A stretch of DNA of 64,000 nucleotides. It comes from Eukaryota sp. TZLM1-RC (taxonomy: Eukaryota; Protista; Metamonada: BaSk clade). Below the pieces are notes generated by a model. That model had not been told where the DNA came from, did no database searches, and was given only the letters and a program-made list of their open reading frames with translations. A program made the translations under genes and the position numbers. Of this stretch, positions 6,276 to 35,646 are shown in pieces; the first letter of the stretch is position 1, and every line of letters begins with the position of its first letter. The DNA lies in assembly GCA_040285825.1 (NCBI GenBank), contig JAUPSS010000003.1:3596001-3660000 (forward strand), given 5' to 3'.

Positions 6276-7057
6276 GGCCTTCATATTTGTCTTAAGTTAT
6301 AGCTTTTTACTACAGTGAATCTTTTTTTGAAATATATTTATTTATGGTAACAATGTTTTCTTTATTGATGAGTTTCGAACCAGTTGTTGTTGTTTCAATT
6401 GTAAAAAAAGCCCAATATATTTGCAGTAGAGAGAGAAAACCTTATCATATTTCTCCTGTTTCAAACCACCTGAGCATCTATTGTTGACCGGAGAGGAGAA
6501 AAGACCTCCACCTTGAGGGTCTTGGAGCAATTTGGATACTGTTTGTAATACGTGTTCATGTAAGCACCTGTGGCTGGTCTCGTTCCACCTGGACCGGCAT
6601 GGCTATCAGGGACAGGAATGGAAATGTACTGCTTAGGGGAAGGTACGGGAGGTCGTTTGAGACGTGCAGAAGAGCCTTTTTTCTTAGCGGAGGTCTTTGA
6701 ACTGCGCTCGGTACGGGGTTGAGAGCGAGGAGCAGGAGGTGTGTACATGAACTGTAACGGTTGAGGCCTCGGCGGGAGAGTAGCATAAGATGCAGTTTGT
6801 GGAGGGCCAGTAGTGAGGTCATGAAGTGAGGGAGTAATAGAAAGAAGTTAAAAGATTACAGGAAGTCTTAAAGCTCGGAAAAGAAGGTAAGTGAGGGAAA
6901 TTAGAACCTAGTTAATGAAGTGAGGGGTAAGTGTGGGAATAGTGAAAACCTCCCAAAACCAACTTGAGGGTTAAAAACCTCCCAGAACAGACAACCAGAA
7001 GTCGAAAATGGGGCGACAAGTGTAAAATTTGATAGATGAGCTCTTTATTCTTACTAC

Positions 7058-9544
7058 ATGTCAGACACCCACTCTGTGTCACGTGTATTCACTCGGTCTT
7101 GTGCACTTAACTCACTGCTGACCCCTGCAGTGGTGAGCAAATTCGGACTGACCTTCCTTTGTTCACCGAGAATTGTCATGAAGCTTTTTTACTGCTTCAA
7201 TCTTTTCTTCTAAATTTTCCGTTGGCATCTAGAGCTTTAGTGGAACAGGATGTATGGTATCTTTTTATGACCGTCATCACCACTGCTTCTTTTCCAACGC
7301 CATCCACCTCTAAAGGCCAACGCCAATTACTCCATATCTTTTACAGTGGATTTCTTCCTGAATTCCCACAAGACAGGTCTCTTGTTTCTTCATCGCAAAA
7401 ATCTTTGGTGCCTTATAGAAATTCATTCAATCTTTTTCTCAATGCTTGGCTGCCCCTTCGGTATCTCTCAATTTTTGCAGATCTTTTAACAAACTTCGAG
7501 TCAATTTTTTTTCTTTTTTATTAGAAGTAAATGAATCTTTAATTCGAAGTCATGTATTTTGTTCAGCAGATTTGGGTGGCATTGGATTCACCAAATCTTC
7601 GATTCTGTGTAAAGCAGCATTTTTGGGAGGTGGTAAAAATTTTGTTTTTGAATTTTTCCAAAGGTTCCCTTTTGATGTTCATCTGATCAATGGTGAATCA
7701 AATTTTTATTTGAATCAACTTCAAATCGAATTAGATAACTTGCCTAGTGATATCTGGATTCAGTGTTTTCCTCAAAATGTTCAAGAAATTCCCACCCGAT
7801 CACTTCCAAATTTACGTTTTTGCTTGAAAAAGCTTCAGCACCATCTGGTTAAATTATATGAAGGCTTGGATTATGAAGTAAGACTTGGCTTGGCCAAAAC
7901 TAAAAATCCCGCTTTCGGTAATTTTTTAAAAGATATTCGTGATAGTTCAGCTGCTGCTTTAGTAACTCAAGTTCCCTCTGTTTATGGACTTTTGTTAAAA
8001 GACAATGAATGGCTTCTAAACATGCGTTTTCGTTGTTTTCTGTGGCCAAACAATTTGCCCAATCATTTAACTTGTAAATGTGGTAAACCTCTTTTGTTTA
8101 CTCATCTTTTGAACTGTAAACATTTCATTACGTTTAGAAGCAAAGTGCATAATAACGTCAGGGACCAAATTTATGTAATGTGCAAATCATATCGAGTAGA
8201 TTCCTTTTTAGAACCGCTGTTATCAAAATTAATTCTCGATGATCTTAATATTGATAGTACGCGTTACAACAGAGCTTCTATGGGTCTGACTAGAGGTGAT
8301 GTAGTTGTTCCTGGTTTAAATGGTAGTTTTACTATTTTGGACGCCATGTCTATTGACCCTTGTAATTCCTCTAACGAACATTTCATTAACTCGGATGTAA
8401 ATAATCCTCTTCTTGCAGGCGAAAAATATAAAATTGCTAAATATGCGAAACCCATTTCCTCGGTTAATGAAAATTCTCATGCCCAATATAATTTATGTCC
8501 ATTTGTTTTTTCTTTGCTTGGATCTCTAGGTAAGGCTGCTATGGCTTTCCTTGAGGATTTTGTTGTAGTTGTAAAGGAAAGAACTGGAAGAATTTTCAAT
8601 CGTGTTTACTGGCAAAACAGGATTGTATTTTCTATTTTTAAGGGAATGGTAACACTAATTTCTGATTCACTATCTTCTTTTGGGAAATTTTCTGAATCTT
8701 TAGCGATTAATTGTTTTGATGTAGGGGAGGCAGGTTTTGAGGATGTGGAGTTTTAATTGTGTATTTCATATTTGTTGTTGAATAAAAATAAATAAGGTAA
8801 AAAAAATGCTTGGCTGCAGACTCAGATTTGTAATTTTATCACTAGAAAAGGGCTTTCTCCTTATTTTGCTTGTCGGGCTCGTCAATTGGCGTCTAACGTA
8901 AAGACAAGTTTACCTAAAATTTGTCAATCCTGGACAAAAAACTTCATTCGTGCTCATTGTAGAGCTCTAGATAAAACGAATGTCTGTGCCAATTATCTTA
9001 TCTCTCTTTCACCAAATGAACTCTTAGCCCAACCGGAAAAAGTAGTTGGTGATTCTGTTCTCGAACACTACATCAATTTCAATCTGACTAATTCAAGAGA
9101 AAGATTCTTTTTATTAAATGCATGTGAGTTTATCTTGAATCTCCTTCAAAGATTTCCTACCACTGCTTCTCTACTGTCTTCACATGATAAAATCACCTTT
9201 TCATCAAAGAAAATTGGTGAGCTTTTTCTCTTTAATCTTAATATTCCACAATACTTACTCACTTTCTTTTCTCATATGCATTGCTCGAAGAAATTTAGAA
9301 TAATACCTTTAGCTTCTCACAAAGGTTCTAAATTTCATGAGGTACCTTCACATGTTTTCTATTCTGTGAAAAAATTCCCACTTATTGAAGGATCATCTTC
9401 CAAATCAAAGTTCATCAAAAATACATGTCTGAAAACGAATATTCAAACAATGTGCTTACCAAAAATTTAATATCAACAGAAAAAGTTTGAAAAATAGATT
9501 TAAAAAAAATATTTATTGCAAACTAATGGTAATGAACTGCTTTT
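7058..9544 (+). pseudogene. Fanzor1-like gene copy 1 (N-terminal half), interrupted by a CRE-like insert and truncated by an LTR at 9545
   Basis: Colinear with 22981-25582 from ~6935. ATG at 7058; frameshifts near 7137 and 9433. Confidence 0.75.
7454..8804 (+). mobile_element. 5'-truncated CRE-clade non-LTR retrotransposon (thumb, Zn knuckle, RLE endonuclease) with 13-bp TSD AATGCTTGGCTGC (7441-7453 / 8805-8817)
   Basis: 'LGGIG', 'CKC..HLLNC', 'RSKVHNNVRD', 'RGDVVV..ILDA' RLE motifs; A-rich 3' tail; exact TSD. Confidence 0.88.
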
Positions 9545-22952: not shown

Positions 22953-23099
22953 ACACTGTGAATGTGATCCACAAGTATGGTGGGAATAGTGAAAACCTCC
23001 CAAGTTGAGGGTAAAAACCCTTTTCAGAACAGGCAACCAGAAGTCGAAAATGGGGTGACAAGTGTAAAATTTGATAGATGAGCTCTTTATTCTCATTAC

Positions 23100-26000
23100 A
23101 TGTCAGACACCCACTCTGTGTCACGTGCATTCACTCGGTCTTGTGCACTTAACTCGCTACTGACCCCTGCAGCGGTGCAACAGATTCGGACTGACCTTCC
23201 TTTGGTCACCGAGATTTGTCATGAAACTTCGTTATTGCTTCAATCTTTTCTTCTAAATTTTCCGTTGGCATCTAGAGCTTTAGTGGAACAGGATGTATGG
23301 TATCTTTTTATGACCGTCATCACCACTGCTTCTTTTCCAACGCCATCCACCTCTAAAGGCCAACGCCAATTACCCCATATCTTTTACAATTGATTTCTTC
23401 CTGAATGCCCACAAGACAGGTCTTTTGTTTCTTCATCGCAAAAATCTTTGGTGCCTTATAGAAATTCATTCAATCTTTTTCTCAATGCTTGGCTGCCCCT
23501 TCGGTATCTCTCAATTTTTGCAGATCTTTTAACAAACTTCGAGTCAATTTTTTTTCTTTTTTATTAGAAGTAAATGAATCTTTAATTCGAAGTCATGTAT
23601 TTTGTTCAGCAGATTTGGGTGGCATTGGATTCACCAAATCTTCGATTCTGTGTAAAGCAGCATTTTTGGGAGGTGGTAAAAATTTTGTTTTTGAATTTTT
23701 CCAAAGGTTCCCTTTTGATGTTCATCTGATCAATGGTGAATCAAATTTTTATTTGAATCAACTTCAAATCGAATTAGATAATTTGCCTAGTGATATCTGG
23801 ATTCAGTGTTTTCCTCAAAATGTTCAAGAAATTCCCACCCGATCACTTCCAAATTTACGTTTTTGCTTGAAAAAGCTTCAGCACCATCTGGTTAAATTAT
23901 ATGAAGGCTTGGATTATGAAGTAAGACTTGGCTTGGCCAAAACTAAAAATCCCGCTTTCGGTAATTTTTTAAAAGATATTCGTGATAGTTCAGCTGCTGC
24001 TTTAGTAACTCAAGTTCCCTCTGTTTATGGACTTTTGTTAAAAGACAATGAATGGCTTCTAAACATGCGTTTTCGTTGTTTTCTGTGGCCAAACAATTTG
24101 CCCAATCATTTAACTTGTAAATGTGGTAAACCTCTTTTGTTTACTCATCTTTTGAACTGTAAACATTTCATTACGTTTAGAAGCAAAGTGCATAATAACG
24201 TCAGGGACCAAATTTATGTAATGTGCAAATCATATCGAGTAGATTCCTTTTTAGAACCGCTGTTATCAAAATTAATTCTCGATGATCCCAATATTGATAG
24301 TACGCGTTACAACAGAGCTTCTATGGGTCTGACTAGAGGTGATCTAGTTGTTCCTGGTTTAAATGGTAGTTTTACTATTTTGGACGCCATGTCTATTGAC
24401 CCTTGTAATTCCTCTAACGAACATTTCATTAACTCGGATGTAAATAATCCTCTTCTTGCAGGCGAAAAATATAAAATTGCTAAATATGCGAAAACCATTT
24501 CCTCGGTTAATGAAAATTCTCATGCCCAATATAATTTATGTCCATTTGTTTTTTCTTTGCTTGGATCTCTAGGTAAGGCTGCTATGGCTTTCCTTGAGGA
24601 TTTTGTTGTAGTTGTAAAGGAAAGAACTGGAAGAATTTTCAATCGTGTTTACTGGCAAAACAGGATTGTATTTTCTATTTTTAAGGGAATGGTAACACTA
24701 ATTTCTGATTCACTATCTTCTTTTGGGAAATTTTCTGAATCTTTAGCGATTAATTGTTTTGATGTAGGGGAGGCAGGTTTTGAGGATGTGGAGTTTTAAT
24801 TGTGTATTTCATATTTGTTGTTGAATAAAAATAAATAAGGTAAAAAAAATGCTTGGCTGCAGACTCAGATTTGTAATTTTATCACTAGAAAAGGGCTTTC
24901 TCCTTACCTTGCTTGTCGGGCTCGTCAATTGGCGTCTAACGTGAAGACAAGTTTACCTAAAATTTGTCAATCCTGGACAAAAAACTTCATTCGTGCTCAT
25001 TGTAGAGCTCTAGATAAAACGAATGTCTGTGCCAATAATCTTATCTCTCTTTTACCAAATGAACCCTTAGCCCAACCCGAAGAAGTAGTTGTTGATTCTG
25101 TTCTCGAACACTACATCAATTTCAATTTGAATAATTCAAAAGAAAGATTCTTTTTATTAAATGCATGTAAGTTTATCTTGAATCTCCTTCAAAGATATCC
25201 TACCACTGCTTCTCTCCTGTCTTCACAAGATAAAATCACCTTTTCATCAAAGGAAGTTGGTGAGCTTTTTCTCTTTAATCTTAAAATTTCACAATACTTA
25301 CTCACTTTCTGTTCTCATATGCATTGCTCGAAGAAATTTAGAATAATACCTTTAGCTTCTCACAAAGGTTCTAAATTTCATGAGGTACCTTCACATGTTT
25401 TCCACTTTGTGAAAAAATTCCCACTTTTTGAAGGATCATCTTCCAAAACAAAGTTCATCAAAAATACATGTCTGAAACGAATATTCAAACAATGTCCTTA
25501 CCAAAAATTTAAGATCAACAGAAAAAGTTTGAAAAATAGATTTAAAGAATTTTTATTGAAAACTAATGGTAATGAACTGCTTTTGACCTTTGAAGGTAAA
25601 AATAATGACTCAAAAAACACAGATGATCTGGATGAACCACCGAAAAAGAAACAAGGATTGAAAAAGGAAATGAAGAGTGACCCTGATGCCAACAAAACCA
25701 GAGAAACACAGTTCAAGGGCATTAAAAAAAGGCCCCGTCGAAAACGTAGACATACAGTCGAAATTTTACCTGAAAGGCCCCTTATTGGCGTTAATCTGGG
25801 CCAATCTAGATTATGTCGTTACTTCTTAAATGATAATCAATGTGGAGTTATCCCTTGTCCAACTGGCAGAAGAAACATGACAAAACCTTCACCCAGTAAA
25901 CACTCGCCCAACCAATATTCCGTTCAAAATTTCAACCAATATTTGAACCATTGGAATTTGGTCAGGAGGAAAGTGTATTTGGAAAATAATCGCCAGGAAT

Positions 26001-26412
26001 GGAAAATAATTAAATTCGATAACTGTAGACGAAAAGAGAGACGGTTCAGAGAGAGTCTCAACAAATTTCAAAAGCTGGCTGGACATTCTGAAAAACTCTA
26101 TCTTGCTGTGGGTTCTGCTAATTTCCCTTCTCATTGCCGAAAAGTCAATCGATATGGATCAGCAAGGGCTTTCAGAAAATGATTGTGTTATCAAAAGACG
26201 TGAAGCACTTGTCAACCAGTGAATTTAATACAAGCAAACTGTCCAGCTGTTGCAGGGCCGAGAATATTCAATCAGGCTCATGGCAAATGCGTATTTGTAC
26301 TGAGTGTCAAATAGTATATGACAGAAATATTGCAAAAGATATTCAAATTAAGAAGAAAGCGGAATTATGGCCGGAAAGATACATTTGCCCAGAAGCTCTG
26401 TTGAGGAGATGA
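23100..26412 (+). pseudogene. Fanzor1-like (TnpB-family) RNA-guided nuclease gene, ~649 aa when reconstructed (23100-23496 + 24861-26412)
   Basis: Removing the CRE insert and one TSD gives in-frame NAWLQTQICNFITRKGLSPYLACRARQLASNVK. RuvC-I LIGVNLG, 'LAVGSANF', RuvC-II SEFNTSKLSSCC, Zn finger CTEC, RuvC-III YDRNIAKDI. Lesions: TGA at 23391 and a 1-nt loss in the A-run at ~26177. Confidence 0.82.
23497..24847 (+). mobile_element. 5'-truncated CRE-clade element, TSD AATGCTTGGCTGC (23484-23496 / 24848-24860)
   Basis: Nearly identical to 7454-8804. Confidence 0.88.
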
Positions 26413-27067
26413 ATGGGGTACCTGAGCATAGAGAAACAAAAACTTTTGAAAAACTGATATTTTATTTTGAGTTGTTTATTTTTGATTAAATCCTCTTGTC
26501 ACTGGGCCTTTGGCTCAGAAGTTTAATGAATTACGTGCAAAAATTCTGTCACAATTAGTGGGATGTAAAATGTTCCAAATTCCAGACCATGCTTATCTTA
26601 GTCCACATTATGGCGGTTTAGGTTGGACGAAGGCTTCTATTCTTACCTCGTGTGCTTTTGTTGGTGGATGCAGAAATGCAATCTTTGAGTTTTCCGAAAG
26701 ATTTGCAGATTGGGAAAATTTATTGCTGACAACGCAAAGTTCCACTGTTTTTGCATTAAATGAAGAAATTTCAAAAATTGATGCAGAAAAATGGGGTCGA
26801 TGCTTTCCCCAATCATTCAATGGCAATATTCCAGAAAAGAATGTTTTAAATTTGAAGTACACTCTTCGAACATTACAAAAACGATTGACTGGAATGTATG
26901 AAAATGATCTCTATAATAATATATGCAGCTCGTGATGCTTTATCCATATATGATAACAAAGAATAAGGGTAATTTATTAGAATTTCACCGGCCCTTATAA
27001 AGGCCATCACTAGTGAACTATACTATATAAATACAAATGTACTAGACTAATTGTCCACAGTACAACA

Positions 27068-30000
27068 CTACCTTTTCCCTCTCTTAGATTCCGAACGAGA
27101 GTTACGAGAACTGACTGCGGGGGAATTAGTCTTAGATTTGGAATTAGAAGATGCCTTCCGTTTCCTGGTAGTGTGAGGACTAATAGAGCGCAAATATGTT
27201 TGATATGCCTCAGTGCTTTTGACGTCAGCAACTGGGACAGACGAAGTCTCGCCGCCATACCAAACTGCGGTACAATAAGGAACTTTATTATTGTTCGAAT
27301 CTACGTAATCAAAGTGATCTATAATTTTAACGATTACAGATTCTTCCATATCACCAGCAGCAATATTCTTATGCCAATCAAGATCTTCTTTAGGGAAGTC
27401 TGAAAGGTATAGTTTACAATGATTTATACTTGCCGTAGACATCGAACCAGTGACGAGATTCTTGAGTAATAAACTTTTATTGGATTTAACTTCTTCAACG
27501 AGAAAAGGGCCAGCGAAGCAACCATGGAGTTTACCATTAGTCTTTAATCGCAAAACTAAGTCACCTTTATTAAAAGGGTTCCTATGTTTGTTAACTTCAG
27601 GCAGTTGTTGAGCTTGCCTGAGTTCTGCCTCTTCTCTCTTCTTTGAAATCCTTTCAAGTTTTGCTTCAAGATCTTTAACAAAGGGAATATTAACATTAGC
27701 TGATTTTATTAGTTCAAACATATTACTAGGATCAGCTCTAGGGCTGTGGTCGCTACCAAACATTAAATTGTAGGGCGAATGACCAGTAACTTTACTAATA
27801 GTTGAATTGATTTGAAGTTGTACAATTGGGATATATTCGCTCCAATTGCTATAATCGCCAGAGTCTACCAAAATCTTTCTAAGACTTTGTAAAATGTCTC
27901 TGTGTCGTCTTTCTACTAAACCATTGCTTTGTGAAAAGCTAGTTAGTGAACGACTTACTTCAATGTTTAATAAATCGCATAACCCTTTGAATATGGCATT
28001 TGCAAATTCAATACCATTGTCACTATGAATCAACAGTGGGATACCAAAAATTGATACTACACTCCATAGGAGGTGATTGGTTGCCTCCACTGCATTCAAT
28101 TCCTTTACAGGGCAAATGATGGTATACCTAGTGAACGAATCTACAAAAACTATTAAATATTTGAATCCATTATCATCTTGTTGTAATGGTCCAAAATTGT
28201 CTGCATTTAATCGTGCAAAAGGTCGATCAGCCCAAAGAGAACCAGATGATTCAATAACATTTTTAGGCACATGTGCCGTCCTTTGACATGCTGGGCATCT
28301 CTTAATATGATTAATCATGTCTTTGCGCATGTCGGGCCAAAAGTAATTACTATTGAGTAATTTCTTTACGCTAGCCGTCACACTAGGATGGCCAACATTT
28401 GCATGTCCATGAATGATAGTTAAGGTCTGCTTCTCTAAACTATCTGGGATAACAATCTTCCCACGATTGTTGGTATACAATTGAATATCAGAATTATATT
28501 TGTAATCTTTGAAATAGTCAGGGTTTGAATCAACATCTATAAGTTGTTCTTGCCTAATCTTTGAGATCCAAGTGTCAAATAAATCAAATTTAGTATCCTC
28601 AACTGCTTCTTTCAAGGCAGATAAGCTATTGATCGTGGGTAGCTCAATTGTGGACGGTTGAGTGAGTAATATCATCCCTTAACAAATTAACTCTAGTTAA
28701 TAAATTTAAATAGGGTAATTGTTCTTCAACTCTGTGAGGTGCCAAGTTTCTCACTTGTTGGACTCGAGGGGTTTTGGGTTTGATATCAACCAATCTAGAC
28801 AACATGTCTGCCCAATAATTCTCCTCGCCTGCAGTGTGAACTACATCAAAATTGAATTCTGACAATATTGGTAGCCACCTTTTCACAATTCTGTTCTTTT
28901 CAGCAGCTGATATAAGGTATGCTAAGTTTCTATGATCAGTGAATATAGTTAATTTCCTCGAAATTAAATAATTCTCTAAACTACTGTCAGTGAGAATTAG
29001 TAAAATTGCATACAATTCTTTCTGAAGTACAGACCCATTCTTTTGTGAAGTTGATAATAATCTGCTAAAAAAGGCAATAGGTACAACCTTTCTCTTAATT
29101 AGCGGTGTCGTAGGATCTTTAGGTGGGTTAGCTTCTTGCCATATTACTCCACCTACAGCCACATCAGACGCGTTAGCACTTATTAAAATATGCTTGTCTT
29201 CTGAGGGCAATTCAAGAGGGATATTTGCTTTGATAAGATTTATAATCTTACCAAAAGCCTCGTCATGATCAGGAGTCCACTTGATTTTTGACGGTTTGTT
29301 TCTGGTTAATTTGTTGATTGGTTCTATCAAGTCAGACAAATTTGGCAACCAGTCACGTATATAATTGATTGAACCTATAAAACTCCTAACTTCAGGTAAT
29401 GTCCTGGGTTTGGGTAGGTTGATCAGTCCCTCGATCCTAGATTCATCTATATTACGGGTTTTGTTTACAAAAATACTACCTAGAATTTTTATTTCATGTT
29501 TGCAAGTGGTAAAGCTACACTTGGGTAGGCCCAGGTTAACTCTAAAACGTTTGGCGCGTTCTAGGACCGTACCTACTCTGGATAGAAATTCATCCAGGGT
29601 CGAAGCTACTATTATTATATCATCGATATAAATAAATACGCCCTCAGAATCAAATATTTCCATCATCATGTTTTGGAAGACTGCAGGAACGTTCTTTAAA
29701 CCAAAACAAGCCCTTTTAAAACTGATCGACATCCCGGGAATTGATACGGTAGTTTTATCAATATCCTCTTCTGCAATTTTGAGCTGCCAAAATGCCTTAT
29801 GTAAATCTAGAGTTGCTATATAATTAGCTTTACTTAGAAACTCTAAAATGTCGCTAATCCTGGGCAAATTTGCCTCTACAGGTTTAGTTAAATCATTTAC
29901 TCCACCAATACCACTAAAATCGCCAGTTAATCGTGGTTTCCTGTGATCAGGGTAAATCACAAGACAGATGGGACTACTGAATTGAGACTTTGCGGGCACA

Positions 30001-30641
30001 GCAAATCCATTACGGATCAATTCGTTAAAAATTTCCTCGGCTACCCGTTGTTTTTCTGGGTTTAATCTTCGAGGTTTCCTTTTGACGACCTTACTTTCGT
30101 CATAAAATGGAATGGTCATCGGCTGACAATCAATTCCATCCGGGTGAGGTAGCCCACTAAATACATTTCTATATTTTTCGAGTAGCACGACTAGGCGTTC
30201 CTCGTCCCTAATGTCATCCAGGCATATTCTACAGCCGAACTCATCTAACTCATGTCTAAATGTGGAATGCCCAAAATCATTACCTAAGTCTGATTTATTA
30301 CTCAATTGTTCTATGAATCTAATTGGTTGACAAATTCTATTATCGAACTCACATTCAGCATTTAAAATGGTGCGGTGTTCGCGATCCAAATTAATATTGA
30401 AACCGTGCTCCGTGCGTAGCCCCAAGGTTTGTAATAAGTCTCTTCCGATCAAAAAATTATTGGTACCAGGAATGATCTAGAATTCGATCCTTAAAAACAC
30501 TTGAGTGGCCAAGCTACCCACATTTAGAGCAAAAACACCACTTGCACATTCCAGGGTCGTGGAGCGAATACGATTTGCCGATAGGTATTCGACGGTCTTA
30601 TTGTCATCAACCGTCTTATTACATTTAGAGGCTAAATCCAT
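27068..30641 (-). pseudogene. pol: protease C-half, RT (YIDD), RNase H, integrase (HHCC, DDE, GPF, chromo-like tail)
   Basis: Canonical motifs, with a TAG at ~30478 and a 4-bp duplication frameshift at ~28660. Confidence 0.9.
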
Positions 30642-33600
30642 GATATTGCTGAAAATGCAGCTCCATTATCAATTTTGCCCTGTACTTCCGCGTTGTTTAT
30701 GGTGCAAATTAACCAGAGTTCCCCGTTAGAACTTTCTTGGTTATCTGCTACCCTGGACAGTCTAACACTGTGGATAAAACCCACAGGATTGGATGACTCT
30801 CTAAATCTTTTTAATGGATTTAGGACATTATAATTCGAATCTGCTTTGCTCATTTTATAAATGGATTTGATTGAATTATTTGTAAGGTTATTGTTAAAAG
30901 ATGTATAATCATCTGATTTATTACTACTACTTTTACGTTTTCTATCACGTCTTTCACCTCCTTGACGCTTTTTTGAACCAGGTCTTCCCACTAATTTAAA
31001 ACATTTCTCTTCAGGATGTTTATTGGTTTTGCATAAGTTACACCATTGCTCTGAAGGGATGGGTCGACTGCTTGCTCTAGTGTTCTTAAAAGGACCTTTT
31101 GACTGGCTTCGTCCTTTTTGCGCAGGAGCGTGAGCACCAAAAGCTGTTCTTATCAAATTCATGTCTTTGATCGAGGATTCAAGGCTATTGATCTTGTTAA
31201 CAAATGCGTTACCTAAATCGTAAATCGCATCGCCCAGTTTCTCGTTACTCGAATCAAACTTGCCAATCCAAATGATATATGTGTCCATCAATTGATTGTT
31301 TGTTTTGTCGTTAATAGTTTCGAGAAATCTCTTTGCTGGGTAGACGACAAACGGATTACCATCCGTTCCAGGCATAATTGTACAGCGTCGAATTATATAT
31401 ATGATCTGCTCCATGAAGGCTGTCCATGAAGATTCAGCAGTCATTTTGCGACTGATCTCAGGTGGTCTTACAGACCTTAAAGCCTTCTCAACATCGGTAG
31501 GGTAATTGTACTGGGTGCTGAGTAGCAAATATTCCCAGATTTCGGCGTCAGATGGGTTGTTGCCTAACACGTTTGTTCGGCCTCCATAAAAATTCTGCCA
31601 TTCTGCGATGACCTTACCCTCGATCATAAATCTCAAATACAAAGGGTCCACTTCGAAGAACATAGATCTAACGAAGTCGTACTGATGAACAGGTTGACCG
31701 TATTTGGTGATCGGCGTAAATGCTCTGGTGGGTCCATCGCGATCCCTAACTGTTTTAGCCCAATTGCCAAAGTTAAGAACAAAGTCGAAGATCTTCTTGG
31801 CGTCAAACGCTTCATTTAACTTAACTAGGCATCTCAGTTTGTCGTCTATTCTTTTCCTCAATTTCTCCTCGTCTGTTACAGGAGTTCTATAAAGACCGAG
31901 GGTGTCGACGAGAGAATCTCTTGGAGCATTTGTTCCTAGGGGTTGCGTGGGTATAGATGATTTTATAACAGATGCTTGTGTAGGAGTTGCTTCACAAGAA
32001 GCTCTCCTAGATGCCAGAGGCCCTACAGAAGGTGTACTAAATAGGTTCATATTCCTCTCTTCTGAAGGCAATGTTTCGCCCAACTTTATGATAAATCTTG
32101 TCTTAGGAGGTTCCTCCTGCACAGGTACAGTCTGGGCTGGTGGCCTTAAATCCACCCAATCTGGTGCATCTTTAGATCCTCTAGGGACCCCTGCTAGTTT
32201 ATGATCATATGGAAGGCAACTGCTCTTTATTAAGACATTCTCAAAAACATTTTGGTCGGGCCAGCTATCAACCCATGCCTTAAGTTTAGCCATCCATGCA
32301 TCAGGATATACTAATTTTAACTTGTTAGGGCCAACACGCTGCTCTTTCAATTCAATTACCCTAGTGCCTATTTCTCTAATGTAGGACTCTTTGGTATGAA
32401 ATTGAAGAGTGTCACCTCGAGATTCATCGAATCTGCTCCCAAGCATAATAAAAATGTCCGCAATGGAATCTTTTGGGTGTACGTTCTCCACTAGGAAATG
32501 CCTTACGACGCCTCTGAGGTTTCTACCTTGTTGATTATGAGGATACATTTTAGCTATCCAAAATAGTCTGTCGTAAGCTTCTTGATTTCCACTGAAATAT
32601 ATTTTGTGGTCATCAATTGCATCCCTATGCCATTAGGCAGGCCTGGGAGTAGCAGCTTGATACTTTGAACGAGGAGCGCTGAAATAGCAATCCTCGACTG
32701 CACTCATCCTACACGAGACTGCCGAATCGGTAAGATCATCCAATCTCTTTAAAAGATTTGGACTTTGATCATAACTCTCGTAGACGACGTCGTCAAGTGT
32801 TTTGCCGTGGGCTTCCCCAAAGAGGAAGGGCCAACGTTTCGCTAAATAGTCACGTCGGACCTTCTCACATTCGGCTGAGTCTACGTCTCCCGCAAGACGT
32901 TCTGACTCATTCTCAGCCATTTTTAATAATTCGTCAGCACTCCAATCCATTACATCTTCGGGAGGATTGGCGATGAGGTCCAATAAGAAATCTCTAGTTA
33001 CAGCCTCAACTGCCTTTGCTAATTTCCTTCGGTAAAGACCATGAGAAGTCTTTTCCGTAGATGGGAAACTAGGAGTTGGATTAGGAGGATTGGGTGTATG
33101 AGGTGGTTCATCATCGCTCTCATCCCCTCTCCTGCTGTAGTTCTGATTAAGAGATCCTCTGGAATCACTTTGAGGTTCCTCACTTGAGCTGATGTCAGTA
33201 GGTGAGGAGGGAGTTTTACGTGAGGAGCTAGTCGTAGACTGTTGCTCGCCTTCGCCTCCTTCACCCTCTGTACAAGCGTCAGATTTATTACTTACAACAA
33301 ACGCTTTGAATCTTCGTTGCTCGCTCGGGGTGAGAAAACTCTTCCTACAAGGAAGGAGCTCCGAGGAGTTATTGGGATATGTGTACAGTTCTGTCACATC
33401 CACATCGTGATTACCTCTCTCCTTATTAGGGAGGTGACTTCCTTTCTGGGAGGAAGGGCTCTCCTCAGTGTGAAGTTCACTCTCCTTATTGGGGAGGTGG
33501 CTTTCTTTCTGAAAGGCAAGGCTCTTCTCAGCGGAAAGCTCACTCTCCTTAGGAGGATTACTCTTCCCGAAGGAAGGATTACTCTCCGTAGGTGGAGGAT

Positions 33601-33718
33601 TACTCACCGTGGGTGGTGGATTGTTCTCCTTCAAAGAAGGGACATTACTCTTCCTCAGAGAGGAAGGAGGGTTATCATTGTGGCTTTTCAGGCCATTAAT
33701 TAATGATGCTTTATCCAT
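30632..33718 (-). pseudogene. Very long gag (S/P/E-rich N-terminus, capsid-like core, CNLC..H....C knuckle) and protease N-half; single in-frame TAA at 32633-32635
   Basis: ORFs 32633-33781 and 30632-32548 share one frame, with 28 open codons between the TAA and the next ATG. Confidence 0.75.
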
Positions 33719-34787
33719 ATATGATAACAAAGAATAAGGGTAATTTATTAGAATTTCACCGGCCCTTATAAAGGCCATCACTAGTGAACTATACTATATA
33801 AATACAAATGTACTAGACTAATTGTCCACAGTACAACACTCGGCTGTTTTAAATCAAGATCTTCACTCACTGTTATTGGAAAAGGGTGTTTGTGAAAACA
33901 AGTCATCAGATTCTTCACTTTTTGTAACCATTGTACCACGAAGATTTGGATTGTGTGCCACTAATGAAGCATTTGTAACAAAAATGAGCTCATATTTGAA
34001 CATCCCCATTAATCAATTTTTATCAAAAGAAAAATGTATTTGTTCGAATTCACCTCAACTCACTTTGCGCCATGCTCTGAATTGCTCTAAATTGATAACT
34101 TATTGTTCTTCATTACATGATGCTGTTGGAGACACTGTTTTTAATATGGCACAAACTGCAAGAATATCGTGTATCAAAGAGCCTCTGCTGAAGGAAACAC
34201 TTTCTCTGAATAATTTTGGTTCTGATGATAGAGGTGATGTATACTGTGATTGGATTGATAATTCTGAAGCTATTGTTGACTTTGTTTCATGTAATGTTGC
34301 AAATGATACTTTGGTTCACAGAAGAAAACTTAATCCTGTGAGTGCTCTTGATTTTAAAGCAAAAGAAAAACATAGAAAATATGACAAAGATATTGAAGAG
34401 GCTAATGCTGATAGAAATACACAGCTGGTTTTTATTGCTTTCCCATTTTCGATAAATGGAAGATTATCAGATGAAGCAGAAACTTTTTTGAATGACTTCC
34501 AAAAAATGGTTCAAGAAAAAACAATGAAAAGATTTGATATTTTTTTATGGCGTTCACGGATTCAATTTGCCATTATTAATAGATTACCTTGGTTTTTCAA
34601 TCGAATAAGAGAAGCTTTAGCTAGACAGCAAGCAGATCAAGATTTTGTAGAGGAAATCTTGGTTCAATGATAGTCGTCCCATTAGTTATGAGTTAATTTA
34701 ATTAAGTGTGCAAATTCAATAAATATTTTTGTATTATTTTTGATTATTTTTTTGAAAAACTTTTGAGACCGATCTACAAATACCTTA

Positions 34788-35036
34788 GTAGCATTTGGTA
34801 GGTCCACTTAGATACATCAAGTCGCGAGGCTTTGTTCTGTGAAAGCAGTAGGTGTATTTAAGTGAGGTAGCCCATTGATGAAGATCATGATTGTCTTTGT
34901 CAAATGATGCTACATGTCTCTTACAGCCTGTGAGTAGACATTGAGAAAGTTGAAAACAGGAGTGAATTTTACAGGGGAATGTATGATAAGTAAAAATCTC
35001 AGTTACTCCCAAACTTTGAGTTGCAAACCCAACTCA
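34788..35036 (+). ncRNA. Structured non-coding segment; candidate Fanzor omega-RNA scaffold
   Basis: 14-bp stem 34805-34818/34851-34864 with two G-U pairs, enclosing GCGA (34819-34832) and GAAA (34837-34848) tetraloop hairpins. Outer stem 34788-34802/34896-34913. Hairpins at 34914-34941, 34959-35009 and 35017-35036. Confidence 0.6.
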
Positions 35037-35136
35037 GTATAGATTCTGATTTTTGAAAAGACCAACTTAATTCATCTTATCCTCCGATAATCTCACCACG
35101 GGTTGCTACTTCTTGACATTTTTGTACTACCAGCTG

Positions 35137-35646
35137 ATGTCAGATCCAGGAAGTGATAACAATAAGGAATCAGATTTTCAACGCATGAAAGAGCGTCTTC
35201 AGCAGCTTGCTGAAGAACGTAGAAAACTTTCAGAAGTTACAAAGGCCACTTCGCCTGCTGCTAATGGCACTCCTTCCCACGAGTCTTCCACGTCTCGTCC
35301 CCAGTTATCGTGGTCTCAAAAGGAAGAGATTGATTCTCGTAGCGTTTTTGTTAGCAATTTGGACACCGTGATAACTACAGAGGATATTCAAGATCACTTC
35401 TCAGCATGTGGCTCAATAGAACGAGTTACTCGGCTTACTAACTCCTTTGCTGTACCCAAACCTTTTGCTTATATTGAATTTGCTGATAAGGCGCAAGCAG
35501 AAGCTGCTCTCACATTAGATGGTAGCATAATCAAAGACAATGGTAGGCAGATCAAGGTTGCTCCTAAGCGAACCAATATTCCCTATCTGTCAAGAGGTCG
35601 AAGACGTGCCAGATCATTTAGAGGTAGAGGACGGAGAGGTTTTTAA
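35137..35646 (+). CDS. PABPN1: Nuclear poly(A)-binding protein (PABP2/PABPN1)
   Basis: Coiled coil, 'KEEIDSRSVFVSNLD', RRM with 'FAYIEF', 'GRQIKVAPKRTNIP', RG-rich tail. Confidence 0.9.
   Translation: MSDPGSDNNKESDFQRMKERLQQLAEERRKLSEVTKATSPAANGTPSHESSTSRPQLSWSQKEEIDSRSVFVSNLDTVITTEDIQDHFSACGSIERVTRLTNSFAVPKPFAYIEFADKAQAEAALTLDGSIIKDNGRQIKVAPKRTNIPYLSRGRRRARSFRGRGRRGF

Follow-up and report, generated by a model that had tools for sequence, protein, structure and literature searches.

Layout of the Fanzor locus

The 64-kb stretch of DNA analyzed here (the window, to which coordinates without a locus prefix refer) comes from Eukaryota sp. TZLM1-RC (Skoliomonas) and carries on its + strand a decayed copy of a Fanzor transposon, whose right end is held apart from the remains of its nuclease gene by nested retroelements. 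An initial annotation had proposed that the segment at 34747-35040 encodes an omega-RNA, the guide-bearing RNA of a Fanzor nuclease, displaced by these insertions. Our analysis, which works from sequence throughout, indicates that 34755-35003 is the right-end non-coding module of this decayed Fanzor1-type transposon, and that it most likely encodes an omega-RNA scaffold.

A protein search with the largest piece of the Fanzor open reading frame (ORF) returned 21 relatives, all from TZLM1-RC (84-90% identical) or GEM-RC1 (52% identical). We compared the window with eight loci of TZLM1-RC (L001, L002, L004-L006 and L011-L013) and four of GEM-RC1 (L003 and L008-L010). In all 12 of these loci, a homologue of 34755-35003 stands directly 3' of the homologue of the Fanzor sequence that ends at 26449, so that the segment is multi-copy and always linked to a Fanzor ORF, contrary to the outcome that would have refuted the initial annotation; in the window copy, this linkage is evident only once the insertion is removed. 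The conserved module begins 26 nt past the Fanzor stop codon in intact copies, on the same strand, and when measured on these copies window position 34788 falls 58 nt past the stop codon rather than the ~120 nt first estimated. The GEM-RC1 versions of the segment are more diverged than those of TZLM1-RC. Because the module directly follows the Fanzor ORF in the other loci, we identify the candidate as the displaced 3' non-coding module of the Fanzor element, separated from the ORF by an element of the restriction-like endonuclease (RLE) type and then by a gypsy element. In line with the initial annotation, no known family of host non-coding RNA was recognized: Rfam 15 gave no match at the gathering score anywhere in the window, and a permissive search of 34600-35150 gave two matches at chance level (E = 1.1 and 6.8). 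A metagenome scan with the invariant 23-mer TTGATGAAGATCATGATTGTCTT found a single match (L007), on a GC-rich bacterial contig without Fanzor similarity, which we set aside as a chance match.

Downstream of the Fanzor stop codon, the window copy retains a 37-nt spacer (26413..26449, +) whose last 12 nt (26438-26449) are, by alignment, the left copy of a duplicated target, AAAAACTTTTGA. At the 5' junction this is followed by 39 nt of AT-rich filler (26450..26488, +) that is absent in intact copies and ends with the 13-mer TTATTTTTGATTA, and then by the 3' part of an RLE-type retroelement, RLE-2 (26489..34725, +). RLE-2 is itself in two parts (26489-26932 and 33841-34725), recognized by ORFs at 26510-26935 and 33822-34670 that are homologous to a second such element, RLE-1, at 23497-24849. 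Between the two parts lies a 6.9-kb gypsy element on the - strand (~26933-33840), with Pfam matches to integrase (IN), reverse transcriptase (RT) and RNase H. Its long terminal repeats (LTRs; 26933-27069 and 33704-33840) are 137 bp each and 100% identical, so the gypsy insertion appears very recent. The 3' end of RLE-2 is set at 34725 by a 97-100% identical copy that ends there (18989-18231), and many contig loose ends at 34725/6 mark the same position independently. The 3' junction carries 29 T-rich nt, either filler or a tail (34726..34754, +), which the alignment shows to be absent in intact copies and which include the second TTATTTTTGATTA; the RLE 3' junction in L011 likewise has a variable T-rich tail. 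Homology to intact Fanzor copies resumes with the right copy of AAAAACTTTTGA (34755..34766, +), and a contig of run X2, from a second organism, crosses from the Fanzor stop region directly into 34755. The nested arrangement first described, with a 6.9-kb gypsy inside the element that displaced the scaffold, is thus confirmed.

The target-site duplication of this insertion is a different one from that proposed at first. The 13-mer TTATTTTTGATTA does have exactly two occurrences in the window (26476-26488 and 34734-34746), against a chance expectation of 0.02, and had been read as an AT-rich duplication. Intact copies lack it, however, and it lies inside the junction filler, which rules out this reading. 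By pattern count, AAAAACTTTTGA is single in intact copies and present twice in the window (26438-49 and 34755-66), and the two other readable RLE insertions, those of RLE-1 and of an element in L011, each duplicate 11 nt (TGCTTGGCTGC and AGTGAAATTCA, respectively); we therefore take AAAAACTTTTGA to be the target duplication. The junction filler may stem either from a separate earlier insertion or from a by-product of reverse-transcriptase priming. A contig of run X3 matches the window up to ...AAAAACTTTTGA, with a loose end at 34766, and then reads TTATTATTTTTGATTATAATTT, which is similar to the filler, so the filler motif adjoins AAAAACTTTTGA elsewhere in the genome.

The inserted element had been assigned to the CRE group. 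Its ORFs show CCHC-like and RGD..D..K..KY (RLE) motifs when read by eye, in keeping with a general RLE/CCHC layout; the CRE identity itself is not established, as Pfam gave no match for the ORFs of the RLE-type elements, and the RT portion is not present in the element inserted in the window.

Upstream, homology of the window copy to other Fanzor copies begins at 22980 (92-94% to L001, L002, L004 and L006 by blastn); since other copies reach further left, this copy is cut on its left side. Its 5' piece (22980..23496, +, delimited by blastn) holds an N-terminal ORF piece at 23100-23393. RLE-1, a non-LTR retroelement identified by reading the sequence (23497..24849, +), lies inside the Fanzor ORF, flanked by its duplication TGCTTGGCTGC at 23486-96 and 24850-60. 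Translations of the remaining decayed ORF (24861..26412, +) give two pieces, 24929-26182 and 26134-26412, separated by a frame break. A second Fanzor copy in the window (6933-9544) ends at the equivalent of 25584, and the window holds no second copy of the scaffold.

RLE-1 has a twin at 7454-8806 that is 99.6% identical, in Fanzor DNA whose flanks are only 93.5% and 95.4% identical. The twins sit in the two Fanzor copies of the window, and the site is empty in other copies, including L002, L004 and L006. This could reflect gene conversion or repeated insertion at the same base, in which case the RLE element would be site-specific, with a transposon as its target. RLE-1 and RLE-2 are both ~1.33-1.35 kb long and start at equivalent residues, with proteins only 30-36% identical, which suggests that 5' truncation favors one point or that the elements are short and non-autonomous by nature.

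Conservation and predicted fold of the right-end module

The right boundary of the module is abrupt. All 13 copies, those of GEM-RC1 included, are alike through ...GAAATTCACAGT and unrelated afterwards, which places the boundary at 35003 in the window; the following base is A in 10 copies and T in three. Contig depth, summed over contigs assembled from public runs rather than over raw reads, is 36-160 across 34755-34999 and 2-4 beyond, and heterogeneous loose ends fall at 35003. The predicted change from conserved to variable sequence is therefore present, and it supports a guide beyond the 3' end of the element, although one that would start at ~35004, 37 nt earlier than the position after 35040 that had been given. 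Of the unit originally drawn at 34747-35040, the core (34755/34758-35003) stands, whereas 34747-34754 is filler and a hairpin at ~35016-35037 belongs to the unique flank. By analogy with the Fanzor SpuFz1 (PMC10432273), the would-be guide would occupy 35004..35023 (+), with its start certain to within about 2 nt (+/- ~2 nt). This stretch of unique flank lies 114-133 nt upstream of the ATG (35137) of a PABPN1-like RRM gene on the same strand, and the conserved unit ends 134 nt upstream of that ATG.

Between species, the module is better conserved than the gene it follows. For the intact copies in L011 (TZLM1-RC) and L008 (GEM-RC1), the ORFs are 59% identical as protein and 62% as DNA, with 78% identity at codon position 2 and 43% at position 3. 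The non-coding tails of the same two loci are 80% identical overall and 88% identical in the core. The 5' non-coding regions of TZLM1-RC and GEM-RC1 do not align at all.

The alignment, RNAalifold and pair counts together define a candidate omega-RNA scaffold at 34758..35003 (+). On 11 copies, RNAalifold predicts 73 pairs in 8 helices, in which a closing helix surrounds stems A, B and C and is followed by a short CCUG/CAGG helix and a terminal stem. The closing helix is formed by 34758-64/34945-51 or, alternatively, by 34765-69/34916-20 (+). Stem A (34771-83/34791-804, +) is followed by stem B, CACTTAGATACATC/GGTGTATTTAAGTG (34805-18/34851-64, +), which contains two G-U pairs and encloses two small hairpins (34819-32 and 34837-48) with the GNRA loops GCGA and GAAA; this is the stem described in the initial annotation, and it is present. 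Stem C (34867-87/34892-913, +) and hairpin D (34914-25/34929-41, +) follow. The terminal stem, GUGAAUUUCAC/GUGAAAUUCAC (34962-72/34990-35000, +), contains the right inverted repeat and finishes 3 nt before the element terminus, with AGT (35001-03) as the last bases.

Sequence variation among the copies respects this fold. Paired cells of the alignment are complementary in 98.5% of cases, against 36-45% when partners are slid; double changes occur in 6 pairs among the 11 copies, and the covariation score was reached by 0 of 500 shuffles. Fourteen pairs differ between the species, and every one of them is still paired, five through double changes and nine via G-U. Read on the - strand, these nine G-U pairs would turn into A-C mismatches, which points to the Fanzor strand as that of the RNA. 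We roughly estimate that nine of nine single changes would keep their pairs with p of order 1e-4 in the absence of selection. For 34747-35040, the predicted fold also beats those of shuffled sequences on + (z = -3.2), and does so less clearly on - (z = -1.5). Conservation across species and the strand-specific compensatory changes favor an RNA on the + strand, the strand assigned at first. Folded as single sequences, the window copy gives z = -3.15 and the GEM-RC1 copy L008 gives z = -5.29, the latter recovering the same layout.

The transposon's right terminus reads ...GAAATTCACAG and is followed by TA in 10 of the 13 copies. Both termini can be read in L008, as TA-CTGTGAATTTC ... GAAATTCACAG-TA, where TA flanks an inverted repeat of 11 nt at both ends; in L006, a degenerate left repeat lies 3.43 kb upstream of the right end. 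The 5' regions of TZLM1-RC copies are mosaic, and several loci have common flanks past the apparent left end; the left flanks informative for inferring a transposon-adjacent motif (TAM) number only three, and we expect the TAM to end in TA. In L005, the first right end is followed after 14 nt by part of a second one (AAGTGAAATTCAC; L005:4857-4895). The right end of L011 is split (L011:4716-6825) by a reverse-oriented RLE-type element within the terminal stem, the insertion that duplicated AGTGAAATTCA, and the last 5 nt of the Fanzor element together with the would-be guide lie 2.1 kb away from the rest. Farther upstream, three TZLM1-RC loci carry, on the opposite strand, an ORF that encodes an MJ1316 domain for RNA cyclic-end recognition (L002:2371-2793(-), L006:1862-2440(-) and L013:1777-2022(-)), starting ~27 nt left of the position at which L001 and L004 part from the remaining TZLM1-RC copies; GEM-RC1 copies instead have ~1.2 kb of 5' DNA without an ORF. 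The MJ1316 ORF could be either part of the element or a co-duplicated host gene.

Partner nuclease and alternative explanations

Two intact relatives of the decayed nuclease were found: P0037 (651 aa), a single ORF in L011 and the only intact single-ORF Fanzor copy seen among the loci compared, and P0026 (648 aa), from GEM-RC1. Both keep the RuvC-I motif GVDLG, the RuvC-III motif YDRD(I/V)SAAKNI and a CC..CxxC finger; the RuvC-II glutamate was not located. Both pass the Pfam cut-off for the Cas12f1-like TNB domain (27.6 and 28.8, respectively, versus 26.3). The best match of the family profile in the PDB is SpuFz1 (8gkh; E = 1.3e-10), with weak matches to TnpB (E ~7e-4), and the seven top fold matches of an AlphaFold model are all Fanzor1 proteins: SpuFz1 (S. 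punctatus), PpFz1 (P. parasitica) and GtFz1 (G. theta). Judged by its motifs, profile matches and modeled fold, the intact relative is Fanzor1-like. The protein lineage is isolated, with only 32 matches at E <= 0.001 among 1.84 billion representative proteins.

Drawing on characterized systems, we propose that the module encodes a multi-stem RNA of ~240 nt, whose last stem would form between the right inverted repeat and a complementary internal segment. The RNA would extend across 15-20 nt of flanking DNA, and this part would serve as the guide for the Fanzor nuclease, which would bind the scaffold; from an intact copy, the RNA would start near ...CUUUUGAGACC and end 10-25 nt past CACAGT. In the window, an RLE-type retroelement landed where the scaffold begins, an event that duplicated AAAAACTTTTGA and left AT-rich filler at the junctions; the gypsy element then inserted inside this retroelement. 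The scaffold, its layout intact, therefore lies 8.3 kb from a dead nuclease gene. All helices are kept, since the insertion point coincides with the extreme 5' end of the conserved scaffold.

Several observations weigh against an omega-RNA. Only two lineages stand behind the covariation, so that each change counts as one event, and pairs were counted on the same alignment that gave the predicted structure. The two closing helices are mutually exclusive and about equally supported: a 20-nt indel between the species (A5 columns 205-224; window 34931-34950) switches the helix from GAGAC/GUCUC in GEM-RC1 to an alternative AACUUUU/GRRAGUU with an extra hairpin in TZLM1-RC, where AAA/GGG variants keep U-A or U-G pairs in the alternative helix. 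The scaffold is three times the length of that of SpuFz1. Among the public runs, none typed as RNA contains the stretch. On the protein side, the model is poor, with a mean pLDDT of 60 and fold-match TM of ~0.3. For the window copy in particular, the nuclease carries D-to-N changes in both RuvC-I (GVNLG) and RuvC-III (YDRNIAKDI), the upstream Fanzor mRNA, which presumably carried the scaffold, is gone, and three pairs (34782/34792, 34963/34999 and 34966/34996), of which two belong to the guide-adjacent terminal stem, are disrupted here and in no other copy; one pair is compensated. With its Fanzor ORF in three pieces, a 1.35-kb insertion and a weak Pfam TNB match, the window copy reads as a decayed relic whose own nuclease is dead.

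Among the other explanations, it is unlikely that the module is a cis-acting right end only, in which the inverted repeat and subterminal DNA sites are conserved for transposition by a transposase supplied in trans. The element has no transposase gene of its own, so its ends must be recognized in trans, and the terminal inverted repeat with TA in L008 and its degenerate counterpart in L006 fit such a role. Yet ~240 nt of unbroken conservation far exceeds the needs of a transposon end, the left end is not conserved to a comparable degree between species, and sites in duplex DNA would not select for nine wobble changes that pair on + only, or for five double changes that keep helices. The two roles are moreover compatible; to our knowledge, both coexist in every OMEGA element.

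Expression of the orphan scaffold in the window and its use in trans are possible but unsupported, and we consider it quite unlikely that orphaned scaffolds which, like this one, keep their structure are transcribed, for example by read-through from the inserted retroelement, and end up in trans in the nuclease of an intact copy of the family, for instance P0037. In 10 of the 12 loci with a called neighbor, the gene beyond the right end lies on the same strand; gaps to the called start are 43-630 nt. This is an orientation bias (p ~0.02, a rough estimate of our own from a simple binomial), and right ends of this family do not dock base-exactly onto start codons. Since right ends face same-strand host genes in this way, guides would correspond to host promoter or leader sequences. 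If trans loading did occur, Fanzor ribonucleoproteins (RNPs) would be aimed at the upstream regions of genes, for homing or for co-opted regulation or targeting.

A structured 3' untranslated region (UTR) of the Fanzor mRNA, acting in stability, 3'-end formation or translation control without any guide function, would share the position and strand of the segment, and structure alone does not set this reading apart. We nevertheless hold it to be very unlikely: conservation reaches exactly to the transposon terminus, including the inverted repeat, as it does in proven omega-RNAs (PMC10432273), and a UTR that is better conserved than codon position 2 of the ORF it belongs to would be unusual.

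A host feature, be it a promoter or 5' leader of the PABPN1-like gene or a host non-coding RNA folded by chance or for a host function, would fit the same-strand position, 134 nt ahead of the ATG, and the similar placement of right ends at 10 of 12 loci. It is hardly tenable, as the same sequence occurs at >=12 other loci, each time 3' of a Fanzor ORF and upstream of an unrelated gene, unique sequence starts only at 35004, and no Rfam family matches. These points already refute a host origin; the ends may have been co-opted secondarily as promoters or other upstream regions.

Relation to known omega-RNA systems

The omega-RNA reading, which we regard as the most probable one, would put on record, with cross-species evidence, that skoliomonad metamonads have a Fanzor1 family and, probably, the guide-RNA scaffold that goes with it. 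This is a lineage without published Fanzor work; in the literature searched, no paper names both Fanzor and Skoliomonas. The unusually large and well-defined scaffold and the intact 651-aa P0037 together offer a ready construct for a divergent eukaryotic RNA-guided nuclease. The lesson of the locus itself is mostly anatomical, in that a scaffold can be orphaned by nested retroelement insertions and still keep its layout.

The closest point of comparison is SpuFz1, whose omega-RNA has a 75-nt scaffold with two stem-loops and a variable guide of 14-15 nt (Saito et al. 2023, PMC10432273). Like that RNA, the candidate is encoded on the ORF strand, in the interval from the Fanzor stop codon to the right inverted repeat, which it spans (PMC10432273). 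Both also show a conserved scaffold followed by locus-specific sequence, in a multi-copy element that carries no transposase gene and has received gypsy/Ty3 insertions; such insertions in Fanzor loci, and ORF-less 'ghost' elements, were reported in the same study (PMC10432273). The two RNAs share no sequence similarity. At ~240 nt with six to eight helices, the candidate is far larger than the SpuFz1 scaffold, and its inverted repeat is ~11 nt rather than 30 nt. The SpuFz1 RNA is a proven omega-RNA; for the candidate, expression and binding are predicted.

Scaffold size varies widely between Fanzor1 proteins (PMC11423790), and that of GtFz1 from Guillardia theta (Xu et al. 2024, PMC11423790) is, like the candidate, a larger assembly of several stem-loops (SL1-SL4); Fanzor1 scaffolds can therefore be long and variable. 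The two differ in position, as in GtFz1 the final 17 codons of the ORF are also part of the omega-RNA, and the conserved part here begins ~26 nt past the stop codon.

The omega-RNA (or reRNA) of ISDra2 TnpB offers a further parallel, with a scaffold at the right end, a guide drawn from the flank and a nuclease with RuvC and TNB zinc-finger domains. ISDra2 differs in being a bacterial IS200/IS605 element with TnpA and no inverted repeats, whose scaffold lies mostly within the 3' end of the ORF. In its present state, the window copy resembles the 'ghost' elements of Spu-1 (PMC10432273), in which a scaffold-bearing right end likewise stands apart from any intact nuclease gene and could act only in trans. 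Those ghosts are deletion derivatives that retain both inverted repeats, whereas the right end described here was orphaned by an 8.3-kb nested insertion together with decay of the ORF.

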